Positions 261 through 35,759 of a stretch of 64,000 nucleotides of DNA are shown here, piece after piece. The notes under the pieces were generated by a model, which saw nothing but the letters and a program-made list of their open reading frames with translations, was not told where the DNA came from and did not search any database. Source of the DNA: Sphyrna mokarran (lineage: Eukaryota); NCBI GenBank assembly GCA_024679065.1, contig JAGIQG010000023.1, forward strand, positions 10,168,001 through 10,232,000, in the 5' to 3' direction. Position 1 is the stretch's first letter; each line of letters starts with the position of its first letter. The translations under genes were made by a program, and so were the position numbers.

Positions 261-569
261 CTTCAGATATTTGTAGCTTTACAGAAAATATTGAAAGTAG
301 GCCGAGTTTATCAATACCACAGCTGTACCATCCTGCATCTTCTGGGCGAAGATCCTCCATAGTAACAACAAATAATCCTTGTGTTTTGTTATCTGAGATT
401 GACATTCTCCCTCGCCGTCCATCTGGATCGTCTGATTTTACCAAAACAGAGCACTGGCGACTCCAATATTTCACATGTGACTGGGACAATTTGTCATAGT
501 GACAATCAATAGTGATCGCTCTTCCCAAAGCTCCTGTTACATTATTTTTTGCCCACAATGCTATTGGAG
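261..569 (-). CDS. Ig receptor exon 22: V-set domain V10 (CD300/pIgR-like)
   Basis: Acceptor ttttag, donor G|GTAAAT, 309 nt, phase 1-1. APIALWAKNNVTG..ITIDCHY..KYWSRQC..DAGWYSC..KLQISE. Confidence 0.9.
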
Positions 570-1202
570 CTAAAAAGATGGCAAGTCAAAAGTTGAACTG
601 AAAATAATCGTTTAATACAAACAGATATGTTTCAACAGGATTTGATACCGTGCTCAGAGAAATCTCTGCGATATATTTTCTAATGCAATTGAATACTTTC
701 TTGTTTGAGATCATTGGGCTCATTGAGTACGTGCTCCCCACAGATTTATAATTAGGTAACCATATTGAGATTGTATACTAAGCCCTTTATAAAGCAGGAC
801 ATTAATAGATTACATAATCTTTTAGTTGTGTTCACCATAGGATTATGGCTATTGGTATTTCCATTTTGTACAATGAAAGCACAGTTCTGTCCCTTCCTGC
901 TAATGAAATTATAAAATTTTCATACAGCAATTGTCAAACAGAAGATTGTCTGCTCATGATCACATTAATCTTTGAGGGAGCTTATTGCTCATAGATTGGT
1001 GCTGAGCTTCCTACATCACAACAATGGCCGTGAATCAGTTCCAGCATTGACTGGAACGGAATTTAAGACTGTCCTGATGTTATGAAAAGTGAAAAATAAA
1101 TGCAATTCTATTTTAGTAAAGTTGCTTTGAACGACCAATAAATTTAAATGACATTAATTTAAAAATTAGTTGATTTTTTTTTAATTTTAATGTGATATTT
1201 AC

Positions 1203-1526
1203 CAATGTTGCTGACTTGTGTTAAATAACTGCAATCATTCTCCGAAATGTAGATCACTGACACTATAACCATTTCACTGGATTTGTCTCCCCGGTTATTT
1301 GAGGCTGTGCAGTAATATTGATGATGTCGCTGTGTGAAGGATTGACAATGTAGATCCAGTTTATTGCTGTCAGAGATCTTTGAATCTTCAGACGAGGTCT
1401 TTTTATACCATGTGTACTGAATGGGAAGTGATCCCTGGACAGACTCACAGGAGACGGACACTGAGCCCCCAGAACATGAGGCATTTGGTGCTGATAGAAA
1501 TTCAAGTTCAGGGGCTGACACGGGTT
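1203..1526 (-). CDS. Ig receptor exon 21: C2-type Ig domain C10
   Basis: Acceptor ttcccacag, donor G|GTAAAT, 324 nt, phase 1-1. EPVSAP..VSCES..YTWYK..LHC..YYCTASN..NDCSY. Confidence 0.9.
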
Positions 1527-2767
1527 CTGTGGGAAAAAGACAATCGTTAACGGATTTTCTCAATAATTTCATTGCAGTGTTTATGTGACACTAAGTAAAA
1601 AAAGCTTTAACTTTAAACTTTAAATGATTAATCTTTAGAATGACCAAAATATTAATTGGTTTCATATTACCAGTACTTCTACACTTCATCCAGGGTGTGA
1701 GGAGGAAGGGGAAGTGTTAGCGAGATATGGCAGTGGGCAATTGTCCGAAAGCAGATCTATTGATTGCTCTCATGTACAGCACATATTCATGATGATAGAT
1801 TAGTTAGTGACAAGCATTGGAGTGTGATCTGAGACAGACTGTGTATGTAGTGGAGATTTAAACATCTTTCCTAAAATCGATTGAATCTTGAGCTAAAAAG
1901 TCTGACATTGAATGATCCGCCCCCACTGCCAGTTAGAATAGGGAATTTGGCACTCAGGCAAATCTCCATTCACAGCAGCGGGACTGGATAATTCCAGCTG
2001 AGGACGAGTTTGGTGCATTCCAGACATTGTTTGTATTTGTATTTAACATTCGACAGTAAGTAGCATTGAAGATTAAAGTGTGAGTACTGTTTAAGGTCAA
2101 GATTTTATAAATTTGAACAAACGAGACTGAAAAATCCCGCGGAAGTCAACAGACGTTTCCGTTTTCTGCCCCACACCCGCTCCGAAACCATGACGGGCAA
2201 GGCAGTAAATTTTTAAAGCACCATCCAAGAACATGAGCTGGGAGATAGAAGCTTTCCGCTGGCAGCAACTGAAATAGTTAATTGGAGAAACTGGCTTGAA
2301 CTGCTGTTTTTGAGCTGAGTACCTTTGTTTTGAACATACAAAATCGGACGTTCTCATTGCAATCAACACTGGGCACTGACTTTACCAGAGTGTGGAAGTT
2401 TAATGAGCTGAAGAAATTTACTACAGAAGAAGAAGTGAGCTGTTGGTGAGTATCTGGTGAGCATCTGGAAAGTGATCAACGTTTATTGTCCGGGCATCAG
2501 GAGTATGGGTGGTATCCTTGCCAACTTGTTAACAGGACAGTCTGGTCCAAGGTGCAATAATTCTGTCCCCTCTCTCTGGATCATTACTCTTGAGCCTCTG
2601 AATTACAATTCTTCCAACATAATCATTTTTCTCCCTGCCCTCTAGTTGCCAGACTTTGCACTGCTGCGGTCTCCAGACATCGGAACGGTCAATGTCTGCT
2701 CTCAGATAAAGCACCAATCAGACTTTCCAGTCAAGTGTAATAAAGATAATCACTGAGAACAATTTAC

Positions 2768-3076
2768 CGTCAGATATTTGTAGCTTTACGGGAAATATTG
2801 AAAGGAGGCCGGGCTTATCAATACCACAGCTGTACCATCCTGCATCTCCTGGGCGAAGATCCTCCATAGTAACAACAAATAATCCTTGTGTCTTGTTATC
2901 TGTGATCGACATTCTCCCTCGCCGTCCATCTGGATCATCTGATTTTACCAAAACAGAGCACTGACGACTCCAAAATTTCACATGTGGTTGGGACAATTTG
3001 TCATAGTGACAATCGATAGCGATCGCTCTTCCTAAAACTCCTGTTACATTATTTTTTGCCCGCAATGGACTCGGAG
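2768..3076 (-). CDS. Ig receptor exon 20: V-set domain V9
   Basis: ttttcag acceptor, GTAAAT donor, 309 nt open, phase 1-1. Confidence 0.9.
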
Positions 3077-3744
3077 CTGAAAAGACAATAGGTCAAAAAG
3101 TGAACTGAAAATCATTCTTTCATACAAACAGATGTATTTCGATAGAATTTGCCACTGTGTTCAGAGAAACCTCTGCATACATCTTGTAATGCAATTGAAT
3201 GATTCTTTGTTTGAGATCGTTGGGATCATGAACATGTTCTCCGCGTGGATTGATAATTAGACAACCACATTTAGATTGTATACAAATCGCTTTATAAAGC
3301 AAGACCTTGAGAGGTTCCATTAATCTTTTAGTCCTAGTTGGGATCTGTTAGTTTCACAATTGGTATGTGGTTATTGTTCATTTTCATTTTGTACAGTAAA
3401 AACACAGTGCCTTTACACCCAACTCCTGGAGTTATTCAATTTTCAAATAGCAGTTGTCAGACAGTAGATTGCCTGCTCATGATCACATTGCTCTTTGAGG
3501 GAGGTTACTGGTTATAAATTGGCACTGAGCTTCCTACATCACAACAATGGCCATGAATCAGTTCCAGCATTGACACGAACGAACTTTAAAACTGTTGTGA
3601 GGTTGTGAAAAGTGAAAAACAAATGTAATTCTATTTTTATTGAACTTAATTTGAATGACCAATGTAACTAAGCCTGCAAGCAATTCTGACAGACATTAAT
3701 TTAAAAATAAGTTGAATTTTTTTGAAGCTTAAAGTGATATTTAC

Positions 3745-4068
3745 CAATGTTGCTGATTTGTGTTAAATAACTGCAATCCTTCTCTGAAATGTAGATCACT
3801 GACACTATAACCATTTCACTGGATTTGTTTCCCTGGTTATTTGAGGCTGTGCAGTAATATTGATGATGTTGCTGTGTGAACGATTGACAATGTAGATCCA
3901 GTTTATTGGTGTCAGAGATCTTTGAATCTTCAGACAGAGTCTTTTCATACCATGTGTACTGAATGGGAAGTGATCCTTGGACAGACTCACAGGAGACGGA
4001 CACTGAGCTCCCAGAACATGAGGCATTTGGTGGAGATAGAAATTTAAGCTCTGGAAAAGACACAGGTT
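3745..4068 (-). CDS. Ig receptor exon 19: C2-type domain C9
   Basis: ttccacag acceptor, GTAAAT donor, 324 nt open, phase 1-1. Confidence 0.9.
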
Positions 4069-5335
4069 CTGTGGAAAAAAGACAATCATTAATGGATTTT
4101 CACATAAACTTTGTTGCAGTGTGAATTTAAGTCTACATTAACTTGTGACAACATTAAATAATTCTTTAACTTTCAACTTTAAAACTTTAAATTTTAGAAT
4201 GAACAAAAAATTAAATAATTTCATATTACCAGTATTTAGACACCTCACCCAAGATGTGAGGAGGAAAGGGACATTTTAGAGAGAGAGGGACAAATGGCAG
4301 TGGGAGCTTGGCTGAATGCAGGTAGTATCTAGTGATTGCTCTCACGGATAGCAGATAGTCATGATAGCAGATTAGTTACTAACAAGCATAGGAGTGTGGT
4401 CTGAGATAGACATTAGATGTGTGCTGAGGTAACGGGAGACTTAAATATCTTTCGTAAAATCCAATCCTGACTTGAATTTTCCAATATTGTGTGATCCATC
4501 TCCACCATCAGTTGGAATTGGGAATTTGGCACTCAGCCAAATCTCTGCTCACACCAACGGGACTGAATGATTTCAGCTGCAGTAGATTTTGGTGAATTCC
4601 CACCATTGTTTGCATTTGTATTTCACATTCAGAAGTAAGTACCATTCAACATTTAAGTGTGAGTACTGTTTCAAGTCTACAGCAAGGTTTTATGGCCTTG
4701 AACGAGCGAGACTGGAAAATACCACCCAAGATCAACAGACATTTCCACTGTCTGCCTCACACCTGCTTCAATACCATGACGGGCAAGGCAGTAAAATTCC
4801 GATGTAAGTATCATCCAAAAGACATGCATTGGGATATAAAAGCTATCAACTGGCAGCAACTGAAATAGTTAATTGGGAAACTGGCTTGAGCTGCTCTTTT
4901 TGTACTAAGACCCTTTGTTTTTGAACTCAGCACTTCTCACTTCAACCAAGTATGGAAGTTTATTGAGCTGAAGGAATTTACTTCAGGAGAAGAAGTGAAA
5001 TGTTGGTGAGTATCTGGTGAATATTTGGGAAGTGATCAAGGTCTAGTCTCCAGGCAATGGGTGCATGAGTGGGATCATTGCCAACTTTTTGCCAAGGACA
5101 GCAGAGTCATTGGTGAGATAATTTTGACCCCCATCTCTCTGGTTCATTACTCTGAGCCTCTGAATTACATACTATTACTCCAACATAATCATTGTTCTAA
5201 ATGTTTTTTATCTGCCAGGCTCTGCACTGCTGCAGAACTTCCAGGCATCGGAGCTGTCAATGTCTCCTCCCAGATAAAGTACCGAACAGTCATTTCAGTC
5301 AAAAGTAATAAAGATGATCACTGAGAACAATTTAC

Positions 5336-5644
5336 CTTCGGATATTTGTAGCTTTACAGGAAATATTGAAAGGAGGCCAGGCTTATCAATACCACAGCTG
5401 TACCATCCTGCATCTCCTGGGCGAAGATCCTCCATGGTAACAACAAATAATCCTTGTGTCTTGTTATCTGTGATCGACATTCTCCCTCGCCGTCCATCTG
5501 GATCATCTGATTTTACCAAAACAGAGCACTGGCGACTCCAATATTTCACATGTGACTGGGACAATTTGTCATAGTGACAATCAATAGTGATCGCTCTTCC
5601 TAAAACTCCTGTTACATTATTTTTTGCCCACAATGCACTCAGAG
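5336..5644 (-). CDS. Ig receptor exon 18: V-set domain V8
   Basis: ttttcag acceptor, GTAAAT donor, 309 nt open. Confidence 0.9.
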
Positions 5645-6312
5645 CTGAAAAGACAAAGGTCAAAAAGTGAACTGAAAATCATTCTTTCATACAAACAGAT
5701 TTATTTCGATAGAATTTGCCACTGTGTTCGGAGAAATCTCTGCAATGCACCTTGTAATGCAATTGAATGATTCTTTGATTGAGATCGTTGGGATCACTGA
5801 ACATGTTCTCCCTATGGATTGATAATTAGACAACCATATTTAGATTGTATACTAATATCTTTATAAAGCAAGATCTTGAGAGTTTCCATTAATCCTTTAG
5901 CCCTAGTTGGCATCTGTTAGTTTCACAATTGGTATATGGTTATTGTTTATTTTCATTTTGTACAATAAAAACACAGTTCCTTTACACCCGACTCCTGGAG
6001 TTATTCAATTTTCAAACAGCAGTTGTCAGACAGTAGATTGCCTGCTCATGATCACATTGCTCTTTGAGGGAGGTTACTGGTGATAAATTGCGCTGAGCTT
6101 CCTATATCACAACAATGGCTGTGAATCAGTTCCAGCATTGACCAGAACGGAATTTAAGACTGTTGTGAAGTTGTGAAAAGTGAAAAATAAATGTAATTCT
6201 ATTTTTATTGAACTTAATTTGAACGGCCAAAGGAACTAAACCTGTGAACAATTCTGACAGACATTAATTTACAAATTAGTTGAATTGTTTTGAAGCTTAA
6301 AGTGATATTTAC

Positions 6313-6636
6313 CAATGTTGCTGATTTGTGTTAAATAACTGCAATCATTCTCTGAAATGTGGATCACTGACACTATGACCATTTTGCTGGATTTTTCTCC
6401 TTGGTTATTTGAGGCTGTGCAGTAATATTGATGATGTTGCTGTGTGAAGGATTGACAATGTAGATCCAGTTTATTGGTGTCAGAGATCTTTGAATCTTCA
6501 GATGGAGTCTTTTCATACCATGTGTACTGAATGGGAAGTGATCCCTGGACAGACTCACAGGAGACTGACACTGAGCCACCAGAACATGAGGCATTTGGTG
6601 GAGATAGAAATTTAAGCTCTGGAACAGATACGGGTT
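6313..6636 (-). CDS. Ig receptor exon 17: C2-type domain C8
   Basis: ttccacag acceptor, GTAAAT donor, 324 nt open. Confidence 0.9.
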
Positions 6637-7877
6637 CTGTGGAAAAAAAGACAATAATTAACAGATTTTCACATAAACTTTGTTGCAGTGTGGATATAAG
6701 CCTACATTAACTTGTGATACAAATTAAATAATCTTTAACTTTCAACTTTAAAACTTTAAAGTTTAGAATGAACAAAAAGTTAAACAGTTTCATATTACCA
6801 GTATTTAGACACCTCACCCAGGGTGTGAAGAAGAAAGAGAAATTGTAGAGAGAGAGAGACTGTAGTGGGAGCTTGGCTGAATGCAGGTAGTATTTATTGA
6901 TTGCTGTCACAAACAACAGATATTCATGTTAGCAAAGATTAGTTACTAACAAGCATTGGAGTATGATCTGGGATGGACTTTGAGTGTTTGCTGAGATAAT
7001 GGAGATTTAAATATCTTTCGTAAAATCCAATCCTGACTTGAATTCTCTGATATCAAGCGATCCATCTCCACCACCAGTTGGAATTAGGAAATTGGTGCTC
7101 AGCCAAATCTCTATTCACACCAACGGGACTGGATGATTCCAGCTGCAATAAGTTTTGGTGAATTCCAACCATTGTTTGCATTTGTATTTAATATTCAAAA
7201 GTAAGTACCATTCAACATTTAAGTGTGAGTACTGTTTCAAGTCTACAACGAGGTTTTATGGCCTCGAATGAGCGAGACTGGAAAATTCAGCCCAAGATCA
7301 ACAGACATTTCCACTGTCTGCCCCACACCTGCTTCAATACCACGACAGACAAGGCAGTAAAATTCCAATGTAAGTATCATCCAAAGGACATACATTGGGA
7401 GATGAAAGCTATCAATTGGCAGCAACTGAAATAGTTTATTGGGGAAACTGGCTTGAACTGAGACTTTTTGTTTTTGAACTCAGCAATGGAGTCTAACTTC
7501 AACCAAGTGTGCAGGTTTAATGAGCTGAAGGAATTTATTACAGGAGAAGAAGTGAGCTGTTGTTGAGTATTAGGGGAATATTCAGGAAGTGGTCAGGAGG
7601 CATCGGGAGCATGAGTGGAGTCCTTGCCAACTTGTTATCCAGGAGAGTGTGGTCCAAGGTGAAATAAATCTGCCCCCATATCTCTGGATCATTACTCTGA
7701 GCCTCTGAATTACAATTCCTCCAACATAATCATTGTTCTAACTGCTTTCTAGCTGCCAGGCTCTGCACTGCTGCGGAGCCTCCAGACATCAGAGCTGTCA
7801 ATGTCTCCTCCCAGATAAAGCACTGATCAAGTCATGTCAGTTGACAGTAATAAAGATGATCACTGAGAACAATTTAC

Positions 7878-8186
7878 CGTCAGATATTTGTAGCTTTACA
7901 GGAAATATTGAAAGGAGGCCGGGCTTATCAATACCACAGCTGTACCATCCTGCATCTCCTGGGCGAAGATCCTCCATCGTAACAACAAATAATCCTTGTG
8001 TCTTGTTATCTGTGATCGACATTCTCCCTCTCCGTCCATCTGGCTCATCTGATTTTACCAAAACAGAGCACTGACGACTCCAATATTTCACATGTGACTG
8101 GGACAATTTGTCATAGTGACAATTGATAGTGATCGCTCTTCCCAAAACTCCTGTTACATTATTTTTTGCCCACAATGCACTCGGAG
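7878..8186 (-). CDS. Ig receptor exon 16: V-set domain V7
   Basis: ttctcag acceptor, GTAAAT donor, 309 nt open. Confidence 0.9.
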
Positions 8187-8852
8187 CTGAGAAGACAACA
8201 GGTCAAAAATTGAACAGGAAATAATTGTTTATAACAAACAGATATATTTCAATATGATTTGCCACCGTGCTCAGAGAAATCTCTGCACTATATCTTCTAA
8301 TGCAATTGAATACTTCCTTGTTTGAGATCATTGGGCTCATTGAGTACGTGTTCTCCACAGATTGATAATTAGACAACCATATTAGATTGTATACTAAGCC
8401 CTTTATAAAGCAAGACCTTGAGAGGTTCCATAATCTATTAGTCCTATTCGGCATCTGTTGTGTCCATTGCAGGCTTATGGTTATTGTTATTTCCATTTTG
8501 TACAATGAAAGCACAGTTCTTTCCCTTCCTGCTCCTGGAGTTATTAAATTTTCAAACAGCATTTGTCAAACAGCAGATTGTCTGTTCACGATTACATTGC
8601 TCTGTGAGGGAGCTTATCTCTCATGAATTTGCCCTGAGCTTCCTACATTACAACAATTACTCTAAATCAGTTCCAGCATTGACCAGAATGGAATTAAAAA
8701 CTGTCCTGAATTTGTGAAAAGTGAAAAATAAATGCAATTCTATTTTCGTAAAGTTGCTTTGAACGACCAATAGAACTAAAGCCATGAACAATTCAGACGG
8801 ACATTAATTTAAAAATTAGTTGATTTTTTTTGAAGCTTTATGTGATATTTAC

Positions 8853-9176
8853 CAATGTTGCTGATTTGTGTTAAATAACTGCAATCATTCTCTGAAACGT
8901 GGATCACTGACACTGTAACCATTTCACTGGATTTGTTTCCCTGGTTATTTGAGGCTGTGCAGTAATATTGATGATGTTGTTGTGTGAAGGATTGACAATG
9001 TAGATCCAGTTTATTGCTGTCAGAGATCTTTGAATCTTCAGACGGGGTCTTTTCATACCATGTGTACTGAATGGGAAGTGATCCCTGGACAGACTCACAG
9101 GCGGTGGACACTGAGCCCCCAGAACATGAGGCATTTGGTGCTGATAGAAATTTAAGTTCAGGAACAGACACGGGTT
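8853..9176 (-). CDS. Ig receptor exon 15: C2-type domain C7
   Basis: ttcccacag acceptor, GTAAAT donor, 324 nt open. Confidence 0.9.
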
Positions 9177-10230: not shown

Positions 10231-10539
10231 CGTCAGATATTTGTAGCTTTACAGGAAATATTGAAAGTAGGCCGGGTTTATCAATACCACAGCTGTACCA
10301 TCCTGCATCTCCTGGGCGAAGATCCTCCATAGTAACAACAAATAATCCTTGTGTCTTGTTATCTGTGATCGACATTCTCCCTCGCCGCCCATCTGGATCG
10401 TCTGATTTTACTAAAACAGAGCACTGACGACTCCAAAATTTCACATGTGATTGGGACAATTTGTCATAGTGACAATTGATAGTGATCACTCTTCCCAAAA
10501 CTCCTGTTACATTATTTTTTGCCCACAACGCACTTGGAG
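10231..10539 (-). CDS. Ig receptor exon 14: V-set domain V6
   Basis: ttttcag acceptor, GTAATT donor, 309 nt open. Confidence 0.9.
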
Positions 10540-12714: not shown

Positions 12715-13023
12715 CATCAGAAATTTGTAGTTTTACAGGAAATATTGAAAGTAGGCCGGGTTTATCAATACCACAGCTATACCATCCTGCATCCCCTGGG
12801 CGAAGATCCTCCATAGTAACAACAAATAATCCTTGTGTTTTGTTATCTGTGATCGACATTCTCCCTCGCCGTCCATCTGGATCGTCTGATTTTACCAAAA
12901 CAGAACAGTGACGACTCCAATATTTCACATGTGACTGGGACAATTCATTATAGTGACAATTGATAGTGATCGGTCTTCCCAAAACTCCTGTTACATTACT
13001 TTTTGCCCACAATGCACTGGGAG
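12715..13023 (-). CDS. Ig receptor exon 12: V-set domain V5
   Basis: ttttcag acceptor, GTAAAT donor, 309 nt open. Confidence 0.9.
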
Positions 13024-13684: not shown

Positions 13685-14008
13685 CAATGCTGCTGATTTG
13701 TGTTAAATAACTGCAATCAATCTCTGAAATGTGGATCACTGACACAGTAACCATTTCACTGGATTCGTTTCCCTGGTTATTTGAGGCTGTGCAGTAATAT
13801 TGATGATGTTGTTGTGTGAAGGATTGACAATGTAGATCCAGTTTATTGGTGTCAGAGATCTTTGAATCTTGAGACAGGGTCTTTTCATACCATGAGTACT
13901 GAATGGGAAATGATCCCTTGTCAGACTCGCAGGAGACGGACACTGAGCCCCCAGAACATGAGGCATTTGGTGGTGATCGAAACTTAAGCTCAGGAACAGA
14001 CACGGGCT
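13685..14008 (-). CDS. Ig receptor exon 11: C2-type domain C5
   Basis: ttcccacag acceptor, GTAAAT donor, 324 nt open. Confidence 0.9.
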
Positions 14009-15262: not shown

Positions 15263-15571
15263 CATCAGATATTTGTAGTTTTACAGGAAATATTGAAAGT
15301 TGACCGGGCTTATCAATACCACAGCTGTACCATCCTGCATCTCCTGGGTGAAGATCCTTCATAGTAACAACAAATAATCCTTGTGTTTTGTTATCTGTGA
15401 TCGACATTCTTCCTCGCCGTCCATCTGGATCGTCTGATTTTACTAAAACAGAGCACTGACGACTCCAATATTTCACATGTGACTGAGACAATTTGTCATA
15501 GTGACAATCGATAGTGATCGCTCTTCCCAAAACTCCTGTTATATTATTTTTTGACCACAATGCACTCGAAG
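15263..15571 (-). CDS. Ig receptor exon 10: V-set domain V4
   Basis: ttttcag acceptor, GTAAAT donor, 309 nt open. Confidence 0.9.
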
Positions 15572-16230: not shown

Positions 16231-16554
16231 CAATGCTGCTGAATTGTGTGAAATAACTACAATCATTCTCTGATCTGTTGGTCACTGACACTGTAACCAT
16301 TTCACTGGATTTCTCTCCCTGGTTATTTGAGGCTGTGCAGTAATATTGATGATGTCGCTGTGTGAAGGACTGACAACGTAGATCCAGTTTATTGGTGTCA
16401 GAGATCTTTGAGTCTTCAGACGGAGTCTTTTCATACCATGTGTACTGAATGGGAAGTGATCCCTGGACAGACTCACAGGAGAGGGACACTGAGCCCCCGG
16501 AACATGAGGCATTTGGTTCTGATAGAAATTTAAGCTCAGGAACAGACACGGGTT
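16231..16554 (-). CDS. Ig receptor exon 9: C2-type domain C4
   Basis: ttcccacag acceptor, GTAAAT donor, 324 nt open. Confidence 0.9.
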
Positions 16555-17774: not shown

Positions 17775-18083
17775 CATCAGATATTTGTAGTCTTACAGGA
17801 AATATTGAAAGAAGGCCAGGTTTATCAATACCACAGCTGTACCATCCTGCATCTCCTGGGCGAAGATCCTCCATAGTAACAACAAAGATTCCTTGTGTCT
17901 TATTATCTGTCATTGACATTCTCCCTCGCCGTCCATCTGGGTCGTCTGATTTTACCAAAACAGAGCACTGACGACTCCAATATTTCACATGTGATTGGGA
18001 CAATTTGTCATAGTGACAATTGATAGTGATCGCTCTTCCCAAAACTCCTGTTACATTATTTTTTGCTCGCAATGAGCTCGGAG
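17775..18083 (-). CDS. Ig receptor exon 8: V-set domain V3
   Basis: tcttcag acceptor, GTAAAT donor, 309 nt open. Confidence 0.9.
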
Positions 18084-18747: not shown

Positions 18748-19071
18748 CAATGCTGCTGATTTGTGTTAAGTAACTGCAATCATTCTCTGAAATGTAGATC
18801 ACTGACACTGTAATCATTTTACTGGATTTTTCTCCCTGGTTATTTGAGGCTGTGCAGTAATATTGATGATGTTGTTGTGTGAAGGATTGACAATGTAGAT
18901 CTAGTTTATTGGTGTCAGAGATCTTTGAATCTTCAGATGGGATCTTTTCATACCATGTGTACTGAATGGGAAGTGATCCCTGGACAGACTCACAGGAAAC
19001 AGATACTGAGCCGCCAGAACATGAGGCATTTGGTGATGATAGAAATTTCAGTTCAGGAACGGACACGGGTT
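18748..19071 (-). CDS. Ig receptor exon 7: C2-type domain C3
   Basis: ttcccacag acceptor, GTAAGT donor, 324 nt open. Confidence 0.9.
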
Positions 19072-20330: not shown

Positions 20331-20639
20331 CGTCAGATATTTGTAGCTTTACAGGAAATATTGAAAGGAAGCCGGGCTTATCAATACCACAGCTGTACCA
20401 TCCTGCATCTCCTGAGCGAAGATCCTCCATAGTAACAACAAATAATCCTTGTGTCTTGTTATCTGTGATTGACATTCTCCCTCGCCGTCCATCTGGATCA
20501 TTTGATTTTACCAAAACAGAGCACTGACGACTCCAATATTTCACATGTGACTGGGACAATTTGTCATAGTGACAATCGATAGTGATCGCTCTTCCCAAAA
20601 CTCCTGTTACAATATTTTTTGCTCGCAATGCACTCGGTG
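20331..20639 (-). CDS. Ig receptor exon 6: V-set domain V2
   Basis: ttctcag acceptor, GTAAAT donor, 309 nt open. Confidence 0.9.
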
Positions 20640-20821
20640 CTGAGAAGACAATAAGTCAAAAATTGAACTGACAATAATTGTTAAATACAAACAGATATTT
20701 TTCAATCGGATTTACCACTGTGTTCAGAGAAATCTCTGCAATACATTTTGGAATGCAATTGATTACTTCCTTGTTTGAGATCATTGGACTCATTGAATAT
20801 GTTCTCCCTGCGGATTGATAA

Positions 20822-21962
20822 TTGTTGTTCATCCATCATCATCGATGAGGACCTCGACACCATTAATCATTTTGAGTCTGGTTGCGGTGTCTCTAAAGAT
20901 GGCTGATCGGCCAATTCGGGCGTGGGATGTCCTGGCACATATTGGACAGACTTGTGTGGACACTGTAGTTGTTACAATGGTGGCTCTGGACTTGCGCAGC
21001 TCGCCCTTAAGTTGTCCTTCAGGAATACACCTTGCTACGTGAGCTTGACATCCTCCATGGATGAGGCAGCTCCAGGTAGGGCGGTGTTGTGCCAGCAGGG
21101 TGGTCAAGCGACTTCAGGAAGGTCTTGAGTATGTCTTTGAAACTTTTGTTTTGCCCTCCATTCGAGGGTCTTCAAGCAAAGAGTTCTCCAAAAAGGAGCT
21201 GCTTGGACATGCGCTTATCAGACATATGGATGACATGACCTGCCCAGTGGGTCTGCGCTCTCATCAGCAGTAGGGTTGTCCAAAAGTGTGCGCATGTTCC
21301 AAGTGCTAATGGTGAGCGGTGTCACCTTGTGTTTTGTTTGTTTGACCGCAAGCTGGGATCCCCACCAGCTGCAGTAAACTGGCCAAGGTGTAGGCAATGT
21401 TTAGGGCACTTTTCTAGCCCCTTCCTCATTCTACTGAGGTGAGCGATGTGTTCCTGAAGAGGACTGCTCAATCGCACAGGTAGACGCCAAGTTCCACTGC
21501 TACTTTGGTCAGCAGAAAATGACCATTACACCTGAGCCATCTGTGTGCAGGTCCGTGACTACAGCTCCCAGTGTATCCACACCTGCTGCTTTGTCGCTCA
21601 CCCATCGCCATGGGACTTCAAGGATTGAACAGGACACTGATGATGATGATGATGATGATGAAAATGTCAAAACTAGCATTTGGTTTGGATTAAAGTGAGG
21701 GAGATTTGCGCAGTGTCAGCCTCGCTCTCTCTTCTTATTCCCATCTAGATCCAGTGACGAGACAAGAGTCAAGGTGGCTGGAGATGGGACTAGGTGCAAT
21801 GGATGACCAGGGCGTCTTCTATGTCTTGTTCTGCTCTTCGTGTTCCATGATGCTTGCAGAAACCATCTTCTTGACTGTTGGATCTTCCATTGGTCTAATC
21901 CACTCAATCCACCAAAGTCAATCTTTACATGCTGAGATAGACATCTCCCTGTTTCACTGAAG
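20822..21962 (-). mobile_element. Internally deleted (non-autonomous) RTE-clade LINE with target-site duplication
   Basis: APE start LTISTWNMRTLLDNP (~21275-21325) abuts C-terminal motifs HWAGHV..KQLLFGEL and CPICARTSHARIG. Tail gatgatgatggatgaacaacaa. TSD GGATTGATAA at 20812-20821 and 21963-21972. Absent from the other units. Confidence 0.8.
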
Positions 21963-22481: not shown

Positions 22482-22805
22482 CAATGTTGCTGATTTGTGT
22501 TAAATAACTGCAATCATTCTCTGAAACATGGATCACTGACACTGTAACCATTTCACTGGATTTTGCTCCCTGGTTATTTGAGGCTCTGCAGTAATATCGA
22601 TGATGTTGCTGTGTGAAGGATTGACAATGTAGATCCAGTTTATTGGCGTCAGAGATCTTTGAATCTTGAGACGGGGTCTTTTCATACCACGTGTACTGAA
22701 TGGGAAGTGATCCCTGGACGGACTCACAGGAGATGGACACTGAGCCCCCAGAGCATGAGGCATTTGGTGGTGATAGAAATTTAATTTCAGGAACAGACAC
22801 GGGTT
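22482..22805 (-). CDS. Ig receptor exon 5: C2-type domain C2
   Basis: ccccacag acceptor, GTAAAT donor, 324 nt open. Confidence 0.9.
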
Positions 22806-24036: not shown

Positions 24037-24345
24037 CTTCAGATATTTGTAGCTTTACAGGAAATATTGAACGGAGGCCGGACTTAGAAATACCACAGGT
24101 GTACCATCCTGCATCTCCTGGGCGAAGATCCTCCATAGTAACGACAAATAATCCTTGTGTCTTATTATCTGTGATCGACATTCTCCCTCGCCGTCCATCT
24201 GGATCGTCTGATTTTACCAAAAGAGAGCACTGACGATGCCAATATTTCACATGTGACTGGGACAATTTGTCATAGTGACAATCGATAGTGATCGCTCTTC
24301 CCAAAACTCCTGTTACACTATTTTCTGCCCACAAAGTACTTGGAG
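24037..24345 (-). CDS. Ig receptor exon 4: V-set domain V1
   Basis: ttttcag acceptor, GTGAAT donor, 309 nt open. Most divergent repeat V (KYWHRQC, GISKSGLRSIF). Confidence 0.9.
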
Positions 24346-24965
24346 CTGAAAAGACAACAGGTCAAAAATTGAACTAAAAATAGTTGTTTAATATAAACAG
24401 CTATATTTCAGTAGAATTCAGTAAATCTCCCTGATACAGCTTGGAATGCAATTGATATAATTTGGCTCATTGAATATATTCTCCCCATAGATTGATAATT
24501 AGACAACCATATTGAGATTCTATACTAAGCCCTTTATAAAGCAAGACCTTGAGTGGTTCCATTAATCTTTTCATCCTGGTTGGGATCTGTTGGGTTCACC
24601 ACAGGCGTATGGTTATTGTTTATTTTCATTTTGTACAAAAAAGCACAGTTCCTTCACATCTATCTCCTGGAGTTATTATATTTTCAAACAGCAATTGTTC
24701 GACAGTAAATTGTCTGTTCATGTTCACATTGCTCTTTGAGGGAACCTATTGCTCACACGTTGGTGCTGAGCTTCCTACATTGGTTCTGAATCAGTTCCAG
24801 CATTGACCAGAACGGACTTCAAAACTATCCTGAAGTTAATGAAAAGTGAAAAATAAATGCAATTCTATTTTTATTAAAATTGCAATTAAAATGATCAATA
24901 AAACTAAACCCATAAGCAATTCAGACAGACATAATTAAATTCCTGTAGCTTAAAGAGATGTTTAC

Positions 24966-25289
24966 CAATGTTGCTGATTTGTGTTAAATAACTGCAATCA
25001 TTCTCTGAAATGTGGATCACTGACACTGTAACCGTTTCACTGGATTTGTTTCCCTGGTTATTTGAGGCTGTGCAGTAATATTGATGATGTCGCTCTGTGA
25101 AGGATTGACAATGTAGATCCAGTTTATTGGTGTCAGAGATCTTTGAATCTTCAGACGGGGTCTTTTCATACCATGAGTACTGAATGGGAAGTGATCCCTT
25201 GAGAGACTCACAGGAGACGGACACTGAGCCCCCAGAACATGAGGCACTTGGTGGTGATAAAAATCTAAGTTCAGGAACAGACACAGGTT
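24966..25289 (-). CDS. Ig receptor exon 3: C2-type domain C1
   Basis: ttcccacag acceptor, GTAAAC donor, 324 nt open. Confidence 0.9.
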
Positions 25290-25899: not shown

Positions 25900-25909
25900 T
25901 ATATCCACG

Positions 25910-27288: not shown

Positions 27289-27825
27289 TTTGGAATATGG
27301 TGTCCAATTCTGGTCACAACACAATCAGAATGACGTGGAGGCTTCGGAGAAATTGCAGAAAACGTTTACCGGGATGTCCCCTAATGTGGAGGAGACTAAC
27401 TATGAGGAGAGTTTGAATGAGCTGGGATTATTCTCCCTGGAAAGACGAAGGTTCAGGGACAACCTGATGGAAATTTATAAAATTATGAAAGTTATAGATA
27501 GAGTGAACAGTTGGAAGCTTTTCCCAAGGCAGAAATGACAATTACAAGGGGCACAACTTCAAGCTCAGGGGTGAGAGATTCAGTAGAAATGTGCAGGTGA
27601 ACTTTTTTTTTTTTACACAGAGGATGAATGGGGATCTGGAATGCACTGCCAAGTGAGGTGGTTGAGGCAGATACATTAGCCACATTTCAGACTTATCGTG
27701 ACAGACATATGAACAAACAGCGAGGAGAGGGATATAAGCACTTCGTCTAGACAGGTAAATGCGATTGGTACAGGCTTGGAGGGCCGAAGGGCCTGTTCCT
27801 GTGCTGTCCTGTTCTTTGTTCTTTG
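27289..27825 (+). mobile_element. CR1 LINE 3' fragment, degenerate
   Basis: LEYGVQFWS..LGLFSLERRR motif; tail gttctttgttcttt. Confidence 0.8.
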
Positions 27826-28457
27826 ATCCCTGTCAGGGGCTTCCACCATGTTAAATTATGTAATTGTTAAATTTTCCAATTTGTTAACTTTTAATCTGTC
27901 AGCTTCACCCTGAATTTTTACTGGTTTATTTGAAAGAAGCACAAACTGACACATTGCAGATACAGACGGATGTTGGGGATTTGACTGGCTTCCCAACATA
28001 TTGTCAATTTCTGTATATTTAACCCCTCTGTGTTCCCCCACAGCCCCACCATTCACTGCTAAACCAAAAGGTACAATTACTACCAACTGACTGCTCACTT
28101 CACTTTGTTAATGTCTGACTACTAGATTGATGCCAACTGTAAAAATCTGACAGTGTGATATTTAATACATTTCAGACACAGAAAAATATTCTGAGCATCG
28201 CAGGTAATTTTTTTCACAATATCATATAGTGAAAGGAATTGTTTGTCGAATCACGTTTGAAATTCTTGGTCAGAATATTGGACAGACCGCAAACTGAGTT
28301 TGTGTCACAAGAGTCAGATTTCGCAATCTCTGCCCTCTAGCTGTCAGACTCTGCATTGCTGCAGAGCATCGCGTTATCGGAGCTGTCAATCTTTCCTTGC
28401 AGACAAAACATGGATCAGACATTTCAGTAATAAAAAAAATCATTGAGAATAACACAC

Positions 28458-28772
28458 CGTGAGATATTTGCAGCTCCACAGTAAACTTTGGATCGAAGAA
28501 ATAAGTAGCAATTGCACAGCGATACCATCCTGCGTCTTCGAAGTGAAGATCCTTGATCGTAACAGCAAATTTTCCTTCTGACTTGTAATCTGTGATCAAC
28601 GTTTTCTCTTGAGATCCATCTGGATCATCTGTTCTCACTAAAGATGAACAAACTACACTCCAACCCTGACACCAATATTTCACATTTTCTTCGTATTTTT
28701 TATTATAATAGCAATTTATTGTGATCGCTCTTCCCACAATTCCTGTGACTCTGTTTTCTGCGCACAAATCAT
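28458..28772 (-). CDS. Ig receptor exon 2: N-terminal V-set domain V0 (canonical 4-Cys CD300/pIgR-type)
   Basis: Acceptor ttctgtttcag, donor G|GTGTGT, 315 nt, phase 1-1. INCYY..KYWCQGWSVVC..DAGWYRCAIATYFFDPKFTVELQISH. Confidence 0.88.
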
Positions 28773-28809
28773 CTGAAACAGAAGAGAAAACATTTCAGCA
28801 ATTGACCAA

Positions 28810-31800
28810 ATAAGAACATAAGAAATAGGAGCAGGAGTAGGCCATCTAGCCCCTCGAGCCTGCCTCACCATTCAATAAGATCATCAGCTGATCTGAAGTG
28901 GATCAGTTCCACTTATCTGCCTGCCCCCCATAACCCTTAATTCCCTTGTCTATCAGGAACCTATCTACCTGTGACTTAAATATATTCAGTGAGGTAGCTT
29001 CCACCACTTCAATGGGCAGAGAATTCCAGAGACTCACCACCTTTGAGTGAAGAAGTTCCTCCTCAACTCCGAGCTAAACTACACCCCCCCCCCACCTATT
29101 TTGAGGCTGTGCCCTCTAGTTCTGCTCCTTTCTAAGCGGGAAGAATCTCTTTACCTCTAGGCTATCTATCCCCTTCATTACCTTATATGTCTCTATAAGA
29201 TCTCCCCTCAGCCTTCTAAACTCCAACGAGAACAGACCCAGTCGATTCAATCTTTCCTCATAGGCTAACCCCGTCATCTCTGGTATCAGCCTAGTGAACC
29301 TTCTCTGCACTCCCTCCAAGGCCAATATATCCTTTTACAAAGCGGTGACCAAAACTGCACACAGTACTCATTTGTGGCCTCACCAGTGCCCTGTACAATT
29401 GCAGCAAGACTTCCCTGCTTTTATATTCTATCCCCCTCACTACAAAGGCCAACACTCCATTCGCCTTCTTGATCACTTGCTGCACCTGCAGACTGGGTTT
29501 TCGTGATTCGTGCACAAGGACCCCCAGGTCCCTCTGCACCATAGCATGCTTCAGCTTTTCACTCTAAATAATAATCCCCCCTACTATTATTTCTACCAAA
29601 GTGGATGACCTCACACTTGCTAACATTATACTCCATCTGCCAGGTCCTCGCCCATTCACTCGGCCTATCCAGATCTCTCTGCAGATTTTCTGCGCCTTCC
29701 ATGCAATTTGCTTTTCCACTCATCTTTGTGTCATCAGCAAATTTCATTACCCTAAATTCAGCCCCCTCCTCCAGATTGTTGATGTATATGGTAAACAGTT
29801 GAGGCCCCAGCACCGATCCCTGCGGCACTCCACTAGTCACCAAATGCCAACCAGAATAGCACCCATTGATTCCTACCCTCTGCTTCCCATTAAACAACCA
29901 ATCCTCTATCCACGCTAACGCCCTTACCCCCAACTCCGTGCACATTTTGCAGCAACCTTTTGTGAGGCATCTTATCAAACACCTTCTGGAAATCACATCC
30001 ACCGGTTGCCCTCTGTCTACTGCACTAGTCACATGCTCATAGAAATCCAATAAATTTGTTAAACACAACTTCCCCTTCGCAAATCCGTGCTGCGTCTGTT
30101 TGATCAAATTGTTCTCTTCTAGATGTCTTGCTATTTCTTCTTTGATGACAGAATCTAGCATTTTTCCAACTACAGACGTTAAACTAACTATCCTATAATT
30201 CCCTGCCTTTTGTCTGCTACCTTTTTTAAACAGCGGCGTAACATTAGCCTCTTTCCAATCTCCTGGCACTTTCCCGGAGTCCAGCAAATTTTGATAAATA
30301 ATTACTAAGGCTTCCGCTATCACCTCAGCCATTTCTTTCAGAACGCTGGGATGCATTCCATCCGATCCCAGGGACTTGTCTATCTTCCGTCCCGTTAGTC
30401 TATCAAGCACTACCCCTCTAGTGACAGTAATTGCATTAAGGATCTCATCTCCTATCATCCTTCTATCTTTAATATTCAGCAAGCTATTTGTGTCCTCCTC
30501 TGTGAAGACCAACACAAAAAACTTATTTAAAGCCTCAGCCATTTCCTTGTCACCCATCACTAAATCCCCCCTTTCATCCTCCAAGGGTCCAACATTCACT
30601 CTAGCCAGTCTCTTCTTTATATATTTGTAAAAGCTTTTACTTTTTTTTATATTTAGAGCTGGTTTAGCTTCATACTCTATCTTTCCTTTCTTTATCTCTT
30701 TGTTAATCATTCTTTGTTGTTTTTTTAAATCACTCCCAATCTTCTAATCACCCACTATTTTTAGCCGCTCTGAATGCATCAGTTTTTAATTTAATACTCA
30801 CCTTTATTTCCTTCGATAACCACGGCTGGTTATCCCTTGTCCTACAGTCCTTCTTTACCATTGGAATATATTTCTGCTGAGTACCGAAAAAGATCTCCTT
30901 AAAAAATCCTCCACTGTTCCTCAGCCGTCCTACCAACCAATCTGCGTCCCCAATCTACATTCGCCAATTCCGCCCTCATCCTACCGTACTCCCCTCTCTT
31001 CAAACAAAGAACACAGGTTTGGGATCCTACTTTCTCATCCTCCATCTGCACTAGAAATTCAACCATACTATGATCATTCATCTCAAGAGGATCCCTCACA
31101 AGAAGATCCCTAATTCTACCTGCCTCGTTACACAGTACCAGATCTAAGATAGCTCGTTCCCTCGTAGGTCCTATTACATACTGTTCAAGGAAACTATCCC
31201 GACAGCGTTCCAAGAACTCTTCCTCAAGCCCATCACATCTGACTTGGGTTATCTAATCTATATGCAGATTAAAATTCCCCATAATTATCACCATTCTGTT
31301 TCTGCACACATCAATTATTTACTTGTTTATAGCCCGCCCCACCTCAAAGTTATTATTTGAGGGCCTATAAACCACACCCACCAGTGTTTTTCTCTCCTTA
31401 CTATTCCTTATCTCCACCCACAACAATTCCACGTTTTGCTCTTTGGAGCCTATATCTTCTTTTACTATAATATCCTTTATTAACAGAGTCACCCCAGCTC
31501 CTTTTTCCTCCTGTCTATCCTTCCTAAACACCTGATACTCCTGGATATTCAGTTCCCAGTCCCTGCCACCCTGCGACCACGTTTCCATAATGGCCACTAG
31601 GCCACACCCATTTGTGCTGATTTGCGCCATGAGCTCATTCACTTTGTTCCGAATGCTTCATGCATTCGCGTAAAGTGTCTTTACACCAGCCTTTGTCTGG
31701 ACCTTATTTGTAGAAACACTACTAGCTTCTCTCGTGCCCCCTATTCCTTTAATTAGTGGAACATCCTCAACATTAACCTGCACACGTACCCTCTCCTTTA

Positions 31801-33108
31801 CTTTAGATTTTGTAATTTCCCCCACCCCTGCACTCTGCCCCCACTAATTAGTTTAAAGGCCTATCTACAATCCAAGTTATACAATTCGCCAGCACTGTGG
31901 TCCCAGCACGATTCAGACAAAGACCATCCCATCTGAACTGGTCCCATCCGGTGCCAATGCTACATAAATTCAAACCCATTTCTTCCACACCAATCCTTGA
32001 GCTACACATTCATCTCCTTAATCCTATTTACTCTGCACCAATTTGCACATAGTTCAGAGATAACCATCTTGTTGGTTCTGCTTTTTAATTTGGTTCCCAG
32101 ATTATCATACTCCCTCTGTAGATCCTTAGTTCCTATTTTGACTATGTCGTTGGCACCCACATGAACCACAACAACTGGATTTCTACTCTCCCACTCCAGG
32201 TTCCCCTGCAGCCCAGATGAGACATCCTGGACCCGAGCACCAGGCAGGCAACACACCCTTCAGTATCCTTTATCTTTGTCACAAAGGACAGTGTCTATGC
32301 CCCTAACTACCCTGTCCCCAATTACCGCTACATTTCTCTTTACTTCTTCCGCTTTGACCTCTGTCTGCACCACTATACCGTGGGCAGTTTGCTCATCCAC
32401 CCTGCAGTCCTCGTTCTTGTCCACACTGGGAGCAAGAATCTCAAACCTGTTGTGCAGATTCAGGAGCTGAGGCACTTGGGTCTCCCCCTCCTTCTCCCCC
32501 CCAGCCCCCTCCTTCCTCTCATCCTTCCTCCTCACACCCCGTTCCTTCCTTCCACCCTTCCTCCCCTCACTCCCCTCCTTCCCTTCAGCAACACCCCCCC
32601 CCCCTTAGAGTTTGTCAGTTTTGGGGGTTTGACTTTATCTTGTAACACATTACCTAGGTTACATTTCCCTTCCTTGATTTGTCTCAGTGTCTGAAACTGT
32701 GAGTTCAGCTTGTCTATTTTGAGCTGGAGCTCTTGAAGCAGCCAACACTTAGTTCAGATGTGCTCGCTGGGAATGACCTTGGGGTCCAACAGTTCCCACT
32801 TACTACAGAAACAGCACATCACATGTCCCTCCATCTCAGTCACCTAGTGTATTCTAGACCCAGTGAAGAATTTAAACTTACCTTGCTCTTTTCTCTGAAG
32901 CCCTGTGAGCCAAAGCCCTTACAGCTCACTCCACTGTCTTTTGCAACCCTCCTTTTATACTTTGGGCGGTAAAAATCCCTTCCCAGAAGACCCTGTGGCC
33001 CACTTCCTGTTTAACTTTTAAAGCTGGATTTCCATTAAAAAGCCCGCAAAAAGCTTTACAAAGTCAGTTGCTTACCTTCACACTCTTTAACCTTCTTTCC
33101 GCTCGCTC
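28810..33108 (-). mobile_element. Near full-length degenerate CR1 LINE in intron 1
   Basis: ORF1 SGNH-esterase motifs (VIGDR..LPGARVQD..HVGAND), APE fragments (31319-31642) and RT fragments (SGVPQGSVLGP, KFADD; 29559-30710), with frameshifts. Tail cctatttcttatgttctta. Confidence 0.92.
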
Positions 33109-35721
33109 CAAGGAACAACGCTTAATGTAGAGAGAAATATTTTAATAAGATTTACCACTGTGTACAGAGGAAACTCTCCAATATCTGTAGTCATCATTCT
33201 CTTTCTAGTTTGTGCTGAGTGAAAACATGAATATAAAGCCGTGCTGTCAGTGCTAAAGTACTTCACTGCCAATGATTTCTTGTTAATGTATAGTGGCCAT
33301 TGTTATTGTGTCACTTGTCACTCAAGCTTTGCACTGGTGCCTCTGAATGAATGGATTGCAGGGTCAAGACCCACTCCAGAGACTGGAGTATAAAATCTAC
33401 AGGAACATTCTAGTGTAATACTGAGGGACGAGATGGCTCAGATTTTCTTCCCCCAGTCACGTTCACAGAGCTCAGCGATGACTTTCAGGTGAAAGATTAA
33501 TCTGACACCCAGGTCTGGAGGGTCCCTGTCATGGAGAAAATCCTGGGGATGGCTTCAATTTCAAAGCCCCGAGATTGGGAGTGGGACTGGAATCGGGCTG
33601 GCATTCACACAGACATGATTCATTCAACTCTGGATTGCCTTAAATTCATCATCTGCCTCGAATGAAGTGGGATTTTGGTTGAAGAGAAGTGTGTGTGGAA
33701 TCTGGAATTGTAGATTAGAATAGTGAAGAAAAGGTCTGCATTTGATGGATTCTTATTGGACAGCCAGGGTGCACCTTCTGGAAAAGGAAGTTACCCTTTG
33801 AGACCAACTTTGGTGAGTGGCCAAGTTAACATCTTAACAAGTCAAGATGTTAACTTGATAGAAGTTAATTTAAGTTAAGTTAAATTAACTTATTTTAAGT
33901 TAAGTTAAAATAACTTAAATAACTAAATAATGGTTATTTAAGTTATTTTGTTTATGAACCATGGCGCTGGGGAACAGAAACAGGCCTTGTGTCCAGCTCG
34001 CCTCCGGGCTGAGCAGCCTGTGGATTTGTTCCCGGGTCACCCATCCCGACCCATTTTTTGTTGCCTTCCCCGACTCAGTGAATACGGCCCAGGGACGGCA
34101 ATCTGGGCCTCAGTCTGCCCCACAGGTCAATGCACCAGGAATGGCCCATTACTGAGGAAAAAATGCAATGAAGATTTCCGAGGCTGGTTCCTGGGGTAAG
34201 GGGATGGGATGGGAACAGGTTGAATCCACAAGGTGCATATTTCCTGTCGGTTGGAAGAATCAGAGGTGATTGAATTGAAATGTGTAAAATTCTTGACAGG
34301 GTACATTTTGAGCATTTATGTACCACCCTACCAGGACTGGGTATTCTGCAACACAGGATCACAGTCTCAAAATAAAGTGACAGGCACAAAGGATGTGATG
34401 AGGAGATTTTTATTCACTCAAGGTGCTGTGAACCTTTGGAATTCTCCATCCCAGAGAACTTTACATGTTTAGAATTGAAGGATATTAAACACAAAAATTT
34501 ACACATTTTTTGGCATCATCATGATTAATGGATAAGGGGATAGCGTGGGAAATAAGAATTGAGAGTGGAGCTCAGTCAAAGGTACAAATGGCCAAGTCCT
34601 GCTTCTACTTCTAAAGTTCATCTTGAAGATGACAGTATGAATCAAAAATTCCATTGCAGGCAGCATAATAACATCAGTTTAACATGGGGCTGGCATAAAA
34701 ATTTAGATTTACTTTGTTAAATGTCAAAAAATTAGAAGAAAATGATTACATCTTGGAAGGACAAAGTAGACGAAGCATGTACTAGTGATTGGATGGCACG
34801 TTGACACAGTGGTGACCACGGCTGCCTCACTGTGCCAGTGACCCGGGTTCAAATCCAGCCTCGGCTGACTGCAAAGATGTTCAGGTCAGGCTGAACATGC
34901 TAAATTGCCCCTTATTGTCCCAAAATGTTTCGGTTAAGAAAATTAATGAGGCAAATATATAACGTTACGGGCATGTGTAACACACACTTTGGTGCAGACT
35001 TAATGAGCCGAATAGCCTCCTTGTGCATCGTAGGGATTCTATGAAACAGAGTCACTGACAGAATTTAAAAAACTTTCATCAGATGTAACTTAAATAATAT
35101 AAACAATTGCAAACTTGAGGAATATTGTCCTGGAGCCTTTGTTACCTCTGCAGTTTTCAGAGTCAATTGAATGAGCAATAATCAGCAATGGATCACAGGC
35201 ATCTCTCAACATTAGGGAGAGACAAACGGTTACGTTCAGTGTCGGGGGAACGATTCCACAGGAACAGGGAAAGGTGAGGAGGCAGATTTCCATGAACTAC
35301 CACAGCCGGTCTGAGGATCGAACTCCTGCCATTGGAATCATTCTGCATTGTACTCCAAACCCTCCAGTTTCCAGGATGTATTGAGCATGGAACTACATTA
35401 CCAAGTTAACTTTTGCTGGACTGAAATGTGTTACTTCTGCATTTTAATTATTTCAGTCACATAGCTTTTTAACAAAAATGAATAGGTTAGCTTATATTTA
35501 TCGTCAATAATGCCTTTTAATATTTGCTGGTAAATATTTCTGTGGTAAAATACTATCAACAAAATAGCTACAAATATCACAAAAATGCCATTAATTTATT
35601 TTTGCTGAGTTTTCATAGCTTTACATGTCTCCAAGTGTTTAAATATTGCTGCAGGATAAACCATGCACTAGAATTAATCTAACACTCATCATCTTGGTAC
35701 CCAGTTTTGTCCCTTACTCAC

Positions 35722-35758
35722 CAGGCAGAGAAAAGATGAAAAGAATTAAAATCCACAT
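35722..35758 (-). CDS. Ig receptor exon 1: signal-peptide leader MWILILFIFSLP(G)
   Basis: ATG, 11 mostly hydrophobic codons, then a phase-1 donor G|GTGAGTA that is in frame with all downstream phase-1 Ig exons. Peptide is identical in the inverted paralogue. Confidence 0.85.
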
Positions 35759-35759
35759 T

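Follow-up and report, generated by a model that had tools for sequence, protein, structure and literature searches.

A tandem array of V and C2 exons in Sphyrna mokarran as the probable 5' part of a very long MDIR3-like receptor gene

Contig JAGIQG010000023.1 of the Sphyrna mokarran assembly GCA_024679065.1 carries, within a stretch of 64,000 nucleotides (nt) at positions 10,168,001 to 10,232,000 (here called the window and numbered from its first letter), a leader exon followed on the minus strand by a long series of immunoglobulin (Ig) exons of two alternating kinds, V and C2. Such a series raises the question of whether it belongs to one gene encoding a single very long receptor or whether it reflects exons that are used in part, a gene in decay, a row of small separate genes, or an error of assembly. 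The array gene is a real minus-strand gene and a member of the elasmobranch family of MDIR3 and "pIgR-like" proteins. Judged from the sequence, the interval is likely to be the 5' 35.5 kb of one MDIR3-like gene, which would encode a very long multivalent Ig receptor.

Exon anatomy and domain identity of the array

A six-frame list of open reading frames (ORFs) contained, on the minus strand, two alternating kinds of open frames of ~110 amino acids (aa), which recurred with a period of ~2.5 kb from the left edge of the window to ~25.3 kb. Anchoring on one conserved motif per kind located 10 V and 10 C2 copies. The C2 exons were 324 nt long in all 10 cases and the repeat V exons 309 nt long in all 10 cases; each of these 20 exons was preceded by a pyrimidine tract and AG, was followed by GT (mostly GTAAAT), contained no stop, and was in phase 1-1. 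Together with the leader and a distinct first V exon (V0), this gives the layout Va-(C2-Vb)x10, or 21 Ig domains in the window (11 V and 10 C2), where Va denotes a CD300-type V domain with both disulfides of the family and Vb one that lacks a Cys of the extra disulfide. Splice sites were placed on the genomic minus strand, and the coding length in the window was obtained by arithmetic from exons that were not joined, as 37 + 315 + 10 x (324 + 309) = 6,682 nt. An earlier, sequence-only reading of this DNA had proposed the same V-(C2-V)x10 anatomy and the same length; the anatomy was confirmed in 20 of 20 repeat exons, and the length was reproduced as this sum.

The leader exon (positions 35722 to 35758; minus strand, as are all exons of the array gene) has its ATG at 35758 and is 37 nt long (MWILILFIFSLP plus one base, phase 1), with the donor GTGAGT. 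Its 12 aa were identical to the leader of LOC144511685 of Mustelus asterias (starry smooth-hound). A first intron of 6.9 kb separates it from V0 (28458 to 28772; 315 nt), a distinct CD300/pIgR-type V exon in which the extra cysteine pair, KYWC...C, is kept. Unit 1 consists of a 324-nt C2 exon (24966 to 25289; Pfam Ig_3/Ig_2) and a 309-nt V exon (24037 to 24345; Pfam V-set, E = 1.8e-12). Splice sites and open frame define the C2 and V exons of unit 2 (22482 to 22805 and 20331 to 20639), unit 3 (18748 to 19071 and 17775 to 18083), and unit 4 (16231 to 16554 and 15263 to 15571). The exons of unit 5 were matched in a PDB search, the C2 exon (13685 to 14008) to FCRL5 domains at 16.9 to 34.3 bits and the V exon (12715 to 13023) to CLM-1/CD300f at 57.5 bits. 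Unit 6 (C2, 11197 to 11520; V, 10231 to 10539) and the C2 exon of unit 7 (8853 to 9176) were again defined by splice sites and open frame, and the V exon of unit 7 (7878 to 8186) was also modeled, as described below. Splice sites and open frame likewise define unit 8 (6313 to 6636 and 5336 to 5644), unit 9 (3745 to 4068 and 2768 to 3076), and unit 10 (1203 to 1526 and 261 to 569), with the GT donor of the last V exon intact. Positions 1 to 260 correspond to the start of the next V-to-C2 intron by their likeness to the V-to-C2 introns of the other units (84 to 88% identity to eight of nine and 60% to that of unit 6). Because these 260 nt past the last V exon match such introns, the array runs beyond the left edge of the window, which bears out the earlier proposal that it continues outside.

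The V domains are of the CD300 type, and the C2 domains are FCRL5-like. The 309-nt exons matched Pfam V-set (E = 1e-11 to 1e-12), and the 324-nt exons fell at or slightly under the Ig_3/Ig_2 thresholds. Among solved structures, the best single domain for the repeat V was CD300f/CLM-1 (57.5 bits), and the five pIgR domains scored 7 to 35 bits each; V0 matched CLM-1/CD300f at 52.6 bits and its best single pIgR domain at 36.0 bits. An AlphaFold2 model of the unit 7 V domain (pLDDT, 94.3) had CD300lf as its nearest solved fold (TM-score, 0.93; root mean square deviation, 1.9 A; 35 to 36% identity), followed by pIgR D1, CD300a/c, TREM2, and NKp44. These structure-database scores and this fold, together with a match to MDIR3 given below, confirmed the kinship of the V domains to CD300, pIgR, and MDIR that had been suggested from the sequence alone. 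In all 10 repeat V domains, the motif reads W-S/H-R-Q/H-C, in which the first Cys is replaced by Ser or His, so that three cysteines are left. V0 keeps the W-C...C pair, which we take to be the C-C' disulfide of CD300 and pIgR. In human FCRL5 (9loc_A), six domains in succession aligned to the C2 exon at 16.9 to 34.3 bits (summed E = 4.3e-47), and the alignments took in the PVS...P with which each domain starts; titin and CD22 aligned more weakly. The AlphaFold2 model of the C2 domain was poor (pLDDT, 50.7), probably as a result of alignment rows that did not contain the domain, and was set aside.

Exons that would divide the array into smaller genes were sought between the units. A minus-strand scan that allowed as many as 8 mismatches in 37 nt found no second leader-like sequence inside the array; the sole other leader-like match is on the plus strand, at 61446. 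A scan for hydrophobic stretches, which recovered the transmembrane segment in seven of seven family proteins, gave no transmembrane exon on the minus strand between 35721 and 1. Its single match lies 33 to 88 nt behind a donor and therefore cannot be an exon. A tblastn search with family proteins gave no minus-strand match to a tail exon within positions 1 to 35721, and alignments of the introns contained no 60-column stretch with conservation above 0.85, compared with 0.92 to 0.93 in exons. The proposed absence of leader and transmembrane exons between units thus held in the leader scan, the transmembrane scans, and the family tblastn. As no leader, transmembrane, or tail exon lies between them, the units cannot be separate genes.

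Divergence and selection among the units

Nucleotide identity between units averaged 92 to 93% in exons (range, 90 to 96%; maximum, 96.4%) and 81 to 82% over the aligned columns of the two intron classes (maximum, 93%), in which the mean gap fractions were 17% and 9%. Distinct gap blocks occurred at 0.054 per well-filled column of the array introns, a rate at which the 633 exon columns would be expected to hold 34; none was seen (Poisson, 1e-15). At the stop frequency of the introns, 114 stops would be expected among the 2,090 exon codons, which contain none.

Over all unit pairs, synonymous divergence (dS) was 0.16 to 0.17, close to the divergence of the introns, and nonsynonymous divergence (dN) was 0.046 to 0.059. 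The resulting dN/dS ratios, which the sequence-only reading had set as a check, were 0.36 for C2 and 0.26 for V over all pairs and 0.31 to 0.45 over disjoint pairs, and are not near 1. Five disjoint pairs contained 71 replacement changes among 116 in C2 (p = 4e-5) and 53 among 103 in V (p = 5e-9), against a neutral fraction of 0.78. Third codon positions were the most variable, and eight cysteines (five per C2 and three per V) were invariant in all 10 units. Because dS is near the intron divergence, the likeness of the exons is attributed to constraint at replacement sites and not to conversion confined to exons. Purifying selection acts on the array exons, unevenly across units; relative to the majority string, silent changes equaled or exceeded replacement changes in units 3, 5, 6, and 8.

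The ten genomic units gave a star-like maximum-likelihood tree (inner branches, 0.002 to 0.023; end branches, 0.05 to 0.10). Its shape points to duplication in an old burst, with independent divergence afterwards and little later homogenization. Each unit carries indels of its own. The C2-to-V intron of unit 2 contains a private insertion of 1,119 nt (20759 to 21877, minus strand), the last ~65 nt of which match the introns of other units and the remainder of which has no second copy in the window. Since no two units are near identical, the exons show a deficit of indels and stops, and this insertion is private, an expansion produced by assembly is excluded. The earlier statements that the units had clearly diverged from each other and that their introns carry many indels both stand.

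Proposed origin and product, and other readings of the array

The units arose from a block of ~2.5 kb with two exons (C2 and V), duplicated in tandem mostly in one old burst, after which exon length, frame, splice sites, the eight cysteines, and aa sequence have been held while the introns drifted. The predicted product is a very long multivalent receptor of the Ig superfamily, in which the repeated CD300-like V domains are the probable ligand-binding modules and would allow avid binding to polymeric ligands or to surfaces of repetitive structure; the C2 domains probably serve as spacers. A membrane anchor and a signaling tail, if any, would lie beyond the window. All exons are in phase 1-1, so that the loss, gain, or skipping of units is in frame, and unequal crossing-over or exon skipping could change the length of the chain with the frame kept. 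Such phase-symmetric units would account for the spread of domain numbers in the family, from 4 to 21.

The array joins CD300/pIgR-type V and FCRL-type C2 domains in one chain in a cartilaginous fish. Cartilaginous fish are the oldest jawed vertebrates with antibodies. The array is also an unusually clean natural example of the growth of an Ig ectodomain, in that a phase-symmetric block has been copied at least 10 times and kept under selection. Provided that the chain is made in full, it would be among the longest leukocyte-type Ig receptors and would raise questions of reach, of avidity, and of the ligands of CD300-like domains before mammals. A reach of 80 nm presumes a straight chain with ~4 nm per Ig domain, which is a rule of thumb; unliganded pIgR is compact.

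Several points weigh against one long functional chain. The 3' end of the gene, with stop, transmembrane segment, and tail, is beyond the window. V0 is very diverged (52 to 64% aa identity to Mustelus Va domains; branch of 0.52 in the V-domain tree). ORFs for a reverse transcriptase and an endonuclease of the long interspersed nuclear element (LINE) type occupy 29559 to 31642 (minus strand) in the first intron and are oriented like the array gene. Relative to the majority string, unit 1 (24037 to 25289) has 21 nonsynonymous to 6 synonymous changes, with ~3.5:1 expected under neutrality. Unit 7 (7878 to 9176; 9:4) and unit 10 (261 to 1526; 18.5:10.5) are, with their small counts, indistinguishable from the same neutral ratio. 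Some units (1, 7, and 10) may thus be under relaxed or diversifying selection. A search for short protein fragments crossing a V/C2 junction gave no candidate. The public models of the relatives are automatic predictions, several of which are evident fusions of neighbors with two or three transmembrane stretches, and the ligand and extended shape of the product are pure inference.

It is possible, if unlikely, that the units are cassette exons, of which each mRNA carries only some, so that the gene yields a ladder of shorter and partly secreted isoforms, either by in-frame skipping or by exit through an alternative terminal exon in a C2-to-V intron. The 22 exons are all in phase 1 or 1-1 and have near-identical splice sites across units, so that any skip would be in frame, and the Mustelus models have only 11 to 12 domains. 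Furthermore, 8 of 10 C2-to-V introns contain an AG|GAG acceptor that leads into a phase-1 ORF of 2 to 110 aa; this candidate exit ORF lies ~300 to 320 nt past the C2 donor (for example, 8535 to 8203 in unit 7). The 32-aa ORF of unit 3 is similar to the C-terminal 32 aa of a "titin-like" protein of M. asterias, which ends after a C2 domain without a transmembrane segment. However, the exit ORF is not kept in length (13, 2, 32, 14, 32, 110, 30, and 30 aa, with no such site found in two units), and its conservation (0.83) is slightly over that of the neighboring intron and under that of the exons. Selection on most units implies that each one forms part of some translated products, and skate models carry 18 to 19 domains in a single chain. 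An alternative terminal exon may give truncated secreted forms, as a lead only.

In a second reading, the array gene would encode the longest vertebrate protein of the CD300/pIgR type (at least 21 Ig domains) as a secreted multivalent agglutinin of mucosa or plasma, with the orphan cysteine of the V domains coupled covalently to a partner. Such a protein could be the shark stand-in for secretory component, binding polymeric IgM or J chain in a lineage, the sharks, in which Akula et al. (2014; PMC4016189) reported no pIgR or FcRL homologue. This reading is considered quite improbable.

It is very doubtful that the gene is recently dead or dying, for example, through loss of its transmembrane and tail exons or disruption of intron 1 by the LINE, with exons that have not yet decayed. 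The long branch of V0, the near-neutral ratios of units 1, 7, and 10, and the same-strand LINE within intron 1 are all in its favor, and a decayed tail exon with three stops nearby, on the other strand, indicates that gene death does occur in this cluster. Against it, ~17% silent divergence has accumulated since duplication, yet all 20 repeat exons are without stops or indels and every cysteine is kept, so that function could have been lost only very recently. A stop ahead of the transmembrane segment would give a secreted protein, which need not be a dead one. A collapsed or expanded repeat in the assembly, or a cluster of separate small genes, is scarcely credible: tandem repeats of 2.5 kb are hard to assemble and automatic models of relatives sometimes fuse neighbors, but the identity ceilings of exons and introns (96.4% and 93%), the indels of each unit, and the 1,119-nt insertion of unit 2 speak against the former, and the lack of leader, transmembrane, and tail exons between units speaks against the latter.

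The single long receptor gene proposed here lies in a receptor gene cluster with members that are born and die. The block containing its promoter, leader, and start of intron 1 (33303 to 36525) is repeated in inverted orientation at 64000 to 60345 with 81 to 85% identity, and a second leader exon (61446 to 61482, plus strand; 35 of 37 nt identical) is inside this duplicate. The inverted duplicate and its leader therefore indicate a head-to-head paralogue that leaves the window on the right. A relic of a family tail exon was found at 46560 to 46793 (plus strand), with 55% aa identity to residues 1364 to 1441 of M. asterias LOC144511684. It contains three in-frame stops, and an ITIM-like motif (immunoreceptor tyrosine-based inhibitory motif), NIVYASV, survives in it. 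As it is on the strand opposite to the array and upstream of the plus-strand leader, it is an orphan pseudo-exon. Further reverse transcriptase-like ORFs are at 36816 to 37715, 40684 to 41331, and 51073 to 53528, and elements of this sort are abundant in the spacer on the right-hand side of the gene.

Family relatives and comparison with known systems

A HMMER search with one V exon against 1.84 billion representatives returned 1,832 proteins at E <= 0.001, of which the top match was M. asterias LOC144511685 (1,254 aa), with five stretches at 75% identity. The protein of this top match in turn retrieved 47 members of the family in sharks, skates, and rays, and clearnose skate MDIR3 was found with the Mustelus relative as the query (E = 4.9e-182). 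NCBI labels these relatives "polymeric immunoglobulin receptor-like," "Fc receptor-like protein 5," "titin-like," or uncharacterized. When 48 relatives were parsed with hidden Markov models built from the window exons, the usual layout was an alternation of V and C2 with four to six domains, followed by a transmembrane segment with ITIM-like motifs or a short tail; some had a transmembrane segment with Arg and a short tail. The full range was 4 to 19 Ig domains, and the larger models included those of M. asterias (11 to 12 domains), sawfish (12), epaulette shark (10), and thorny skate (18 and 19). The expectation in the sequence-only reading that relatives would be short is thus outdated by the skate models of 18 and 19 Ig domains (2,000 and 2,193 aa), the M. 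asterias models, and a stickleback chain of 19 V domains. Among 8,000 candidates sharing the most words that were scored in the range of 1,206 to 3,838 aa, no family model was longer than 2,193 aa, and among 194 proteins compared, none exceeded 93.2% identity to any window exon, so that the window represents a species other than theirs or an unannotated paralogue. In a tree of V domains, 9 of 10 V units of the window were placed apart from Mustelus units with weak support, a grouping that fits expansion or homogenization after the split from Mustelus. The literature searches made here yielded no account of giant (V-C2)n receptors in elasmobranchs.

Among the systems to which the array gene can be compared, CD300 (CD300f/CLM-1, CD300a, and CD300c) is the best match to the repeat V in sequence and fold. 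CD300, however, has one V domain with both disulfides, whereas the array gene has 11 V among 10 C2 domains and three cysteines in each repeat V. pIgR, which binds polymeric Ig and J chain and undergoes transcytosis, is a multidomain chain of the same V subtype, and every pIgR domain aligned (7 to 36 bits each); it contains only V-type domains, five in the matched mammalian chains and two in the teleost chain, whereas C2 exons stand between the V exons of the array gene. The C2 likeness to human FCRL5 (9loc_A) is moderate, with eight aligned stretches that all fall to the C2 query. The FCRL5 ectodomain is presumably without V domains, and the array gene differs from FCRL in the alternation of V-set exons with C2.

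Two teleost proteins resemble parts of this plan. The stickleback (Gasterosteus aculeatus) model LOC120820825 isoform X1 (P0152; 2,141 aa) has 19 pIgR/CD300-like V domains in a row, followed by one transmembrane segment at the C terminus. Unlike the array gene, it is V-only without C2, it is an automatic model at 36% identity, and giant poly-V receptors may have arisen independently in teleosts. Carp SITR, as described in PMC3031540, is a soluble protein in which a single V/C2-type domain precedes a single CD300-like V domain. By that description, its domain order is that of one window unit, although it is a single unit and from a teleost.

Within the family, clearnose skate MDIR3 (P0192; 701 aa; named as in UniRef) is a molecule in which the same CD300-like V and C2 types alternate. 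When MDIR3 was compared with the window by tblastn, aa identity reached 70% in the C2 exons and was 43 to 44% in V0. MDIR3 has five Ig domains (Va-Va-C2-Va-C2), a transmembrane segment, and ITIM-like motifs, compared with at least 21 Ig domains in the array gene, and the repeat V of the array gene lacks one Cys of the extra disulfide, unlike MDIR3. The original description of MDIR3 is reportedly that of Cannon et al. in Immunogenetics in 2006, which PMC3031540 cites. MDIRs form a multigene family of elasmobranchs, type I membrane proteins with an ITIM tail or a transmembrane segment of the activating type. A multigene cluster of the MDIR type is present in the window, in the form of the second plus-strand leader, the inverted duplicate, and the relic tail exon.

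The nearest relatives in sequence are those of M. asterias, namely, the "titin-like" protein (P0155; 1,314 aa) and LOC144511684 and LOC144511685, with up to 93% aa identity per exon. Their leader is identical or near-identical to that of the array gene, with which they have the layout Va-(C2-Vb)n in common. The "titin-like" protein is Va-(C2-Vb)5-C2, and the Mustelus models, at 11 to 12 Ig domains, have fewer than the array gene. Comparable giants are two thorny skate (Amblyraja radiata) models, LOC116987004 (2,193 aa; 19 Ig domains) and LOC116986997 (2,000 aa; 18 Ig domains). Both are likewise alternating V-C2 chains with one transmembrane segment at the C terminus, and LOC116987004 has ITIM-like motifs as well. 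These models, which are predicted only, are 55 to 57% identical to the Mustelus relative, and a motif rule assigns every one of their V domains to the two-disulfide kind; their expansion was probably independent of that of the array gene. Because comparable giant models from skates and smooth-hound are already public, the advance is one of degree and documentation and not of kind. The array gene is the longest family member seen so far, a very large MDIR3-like gene rather than a new kind of molecule.

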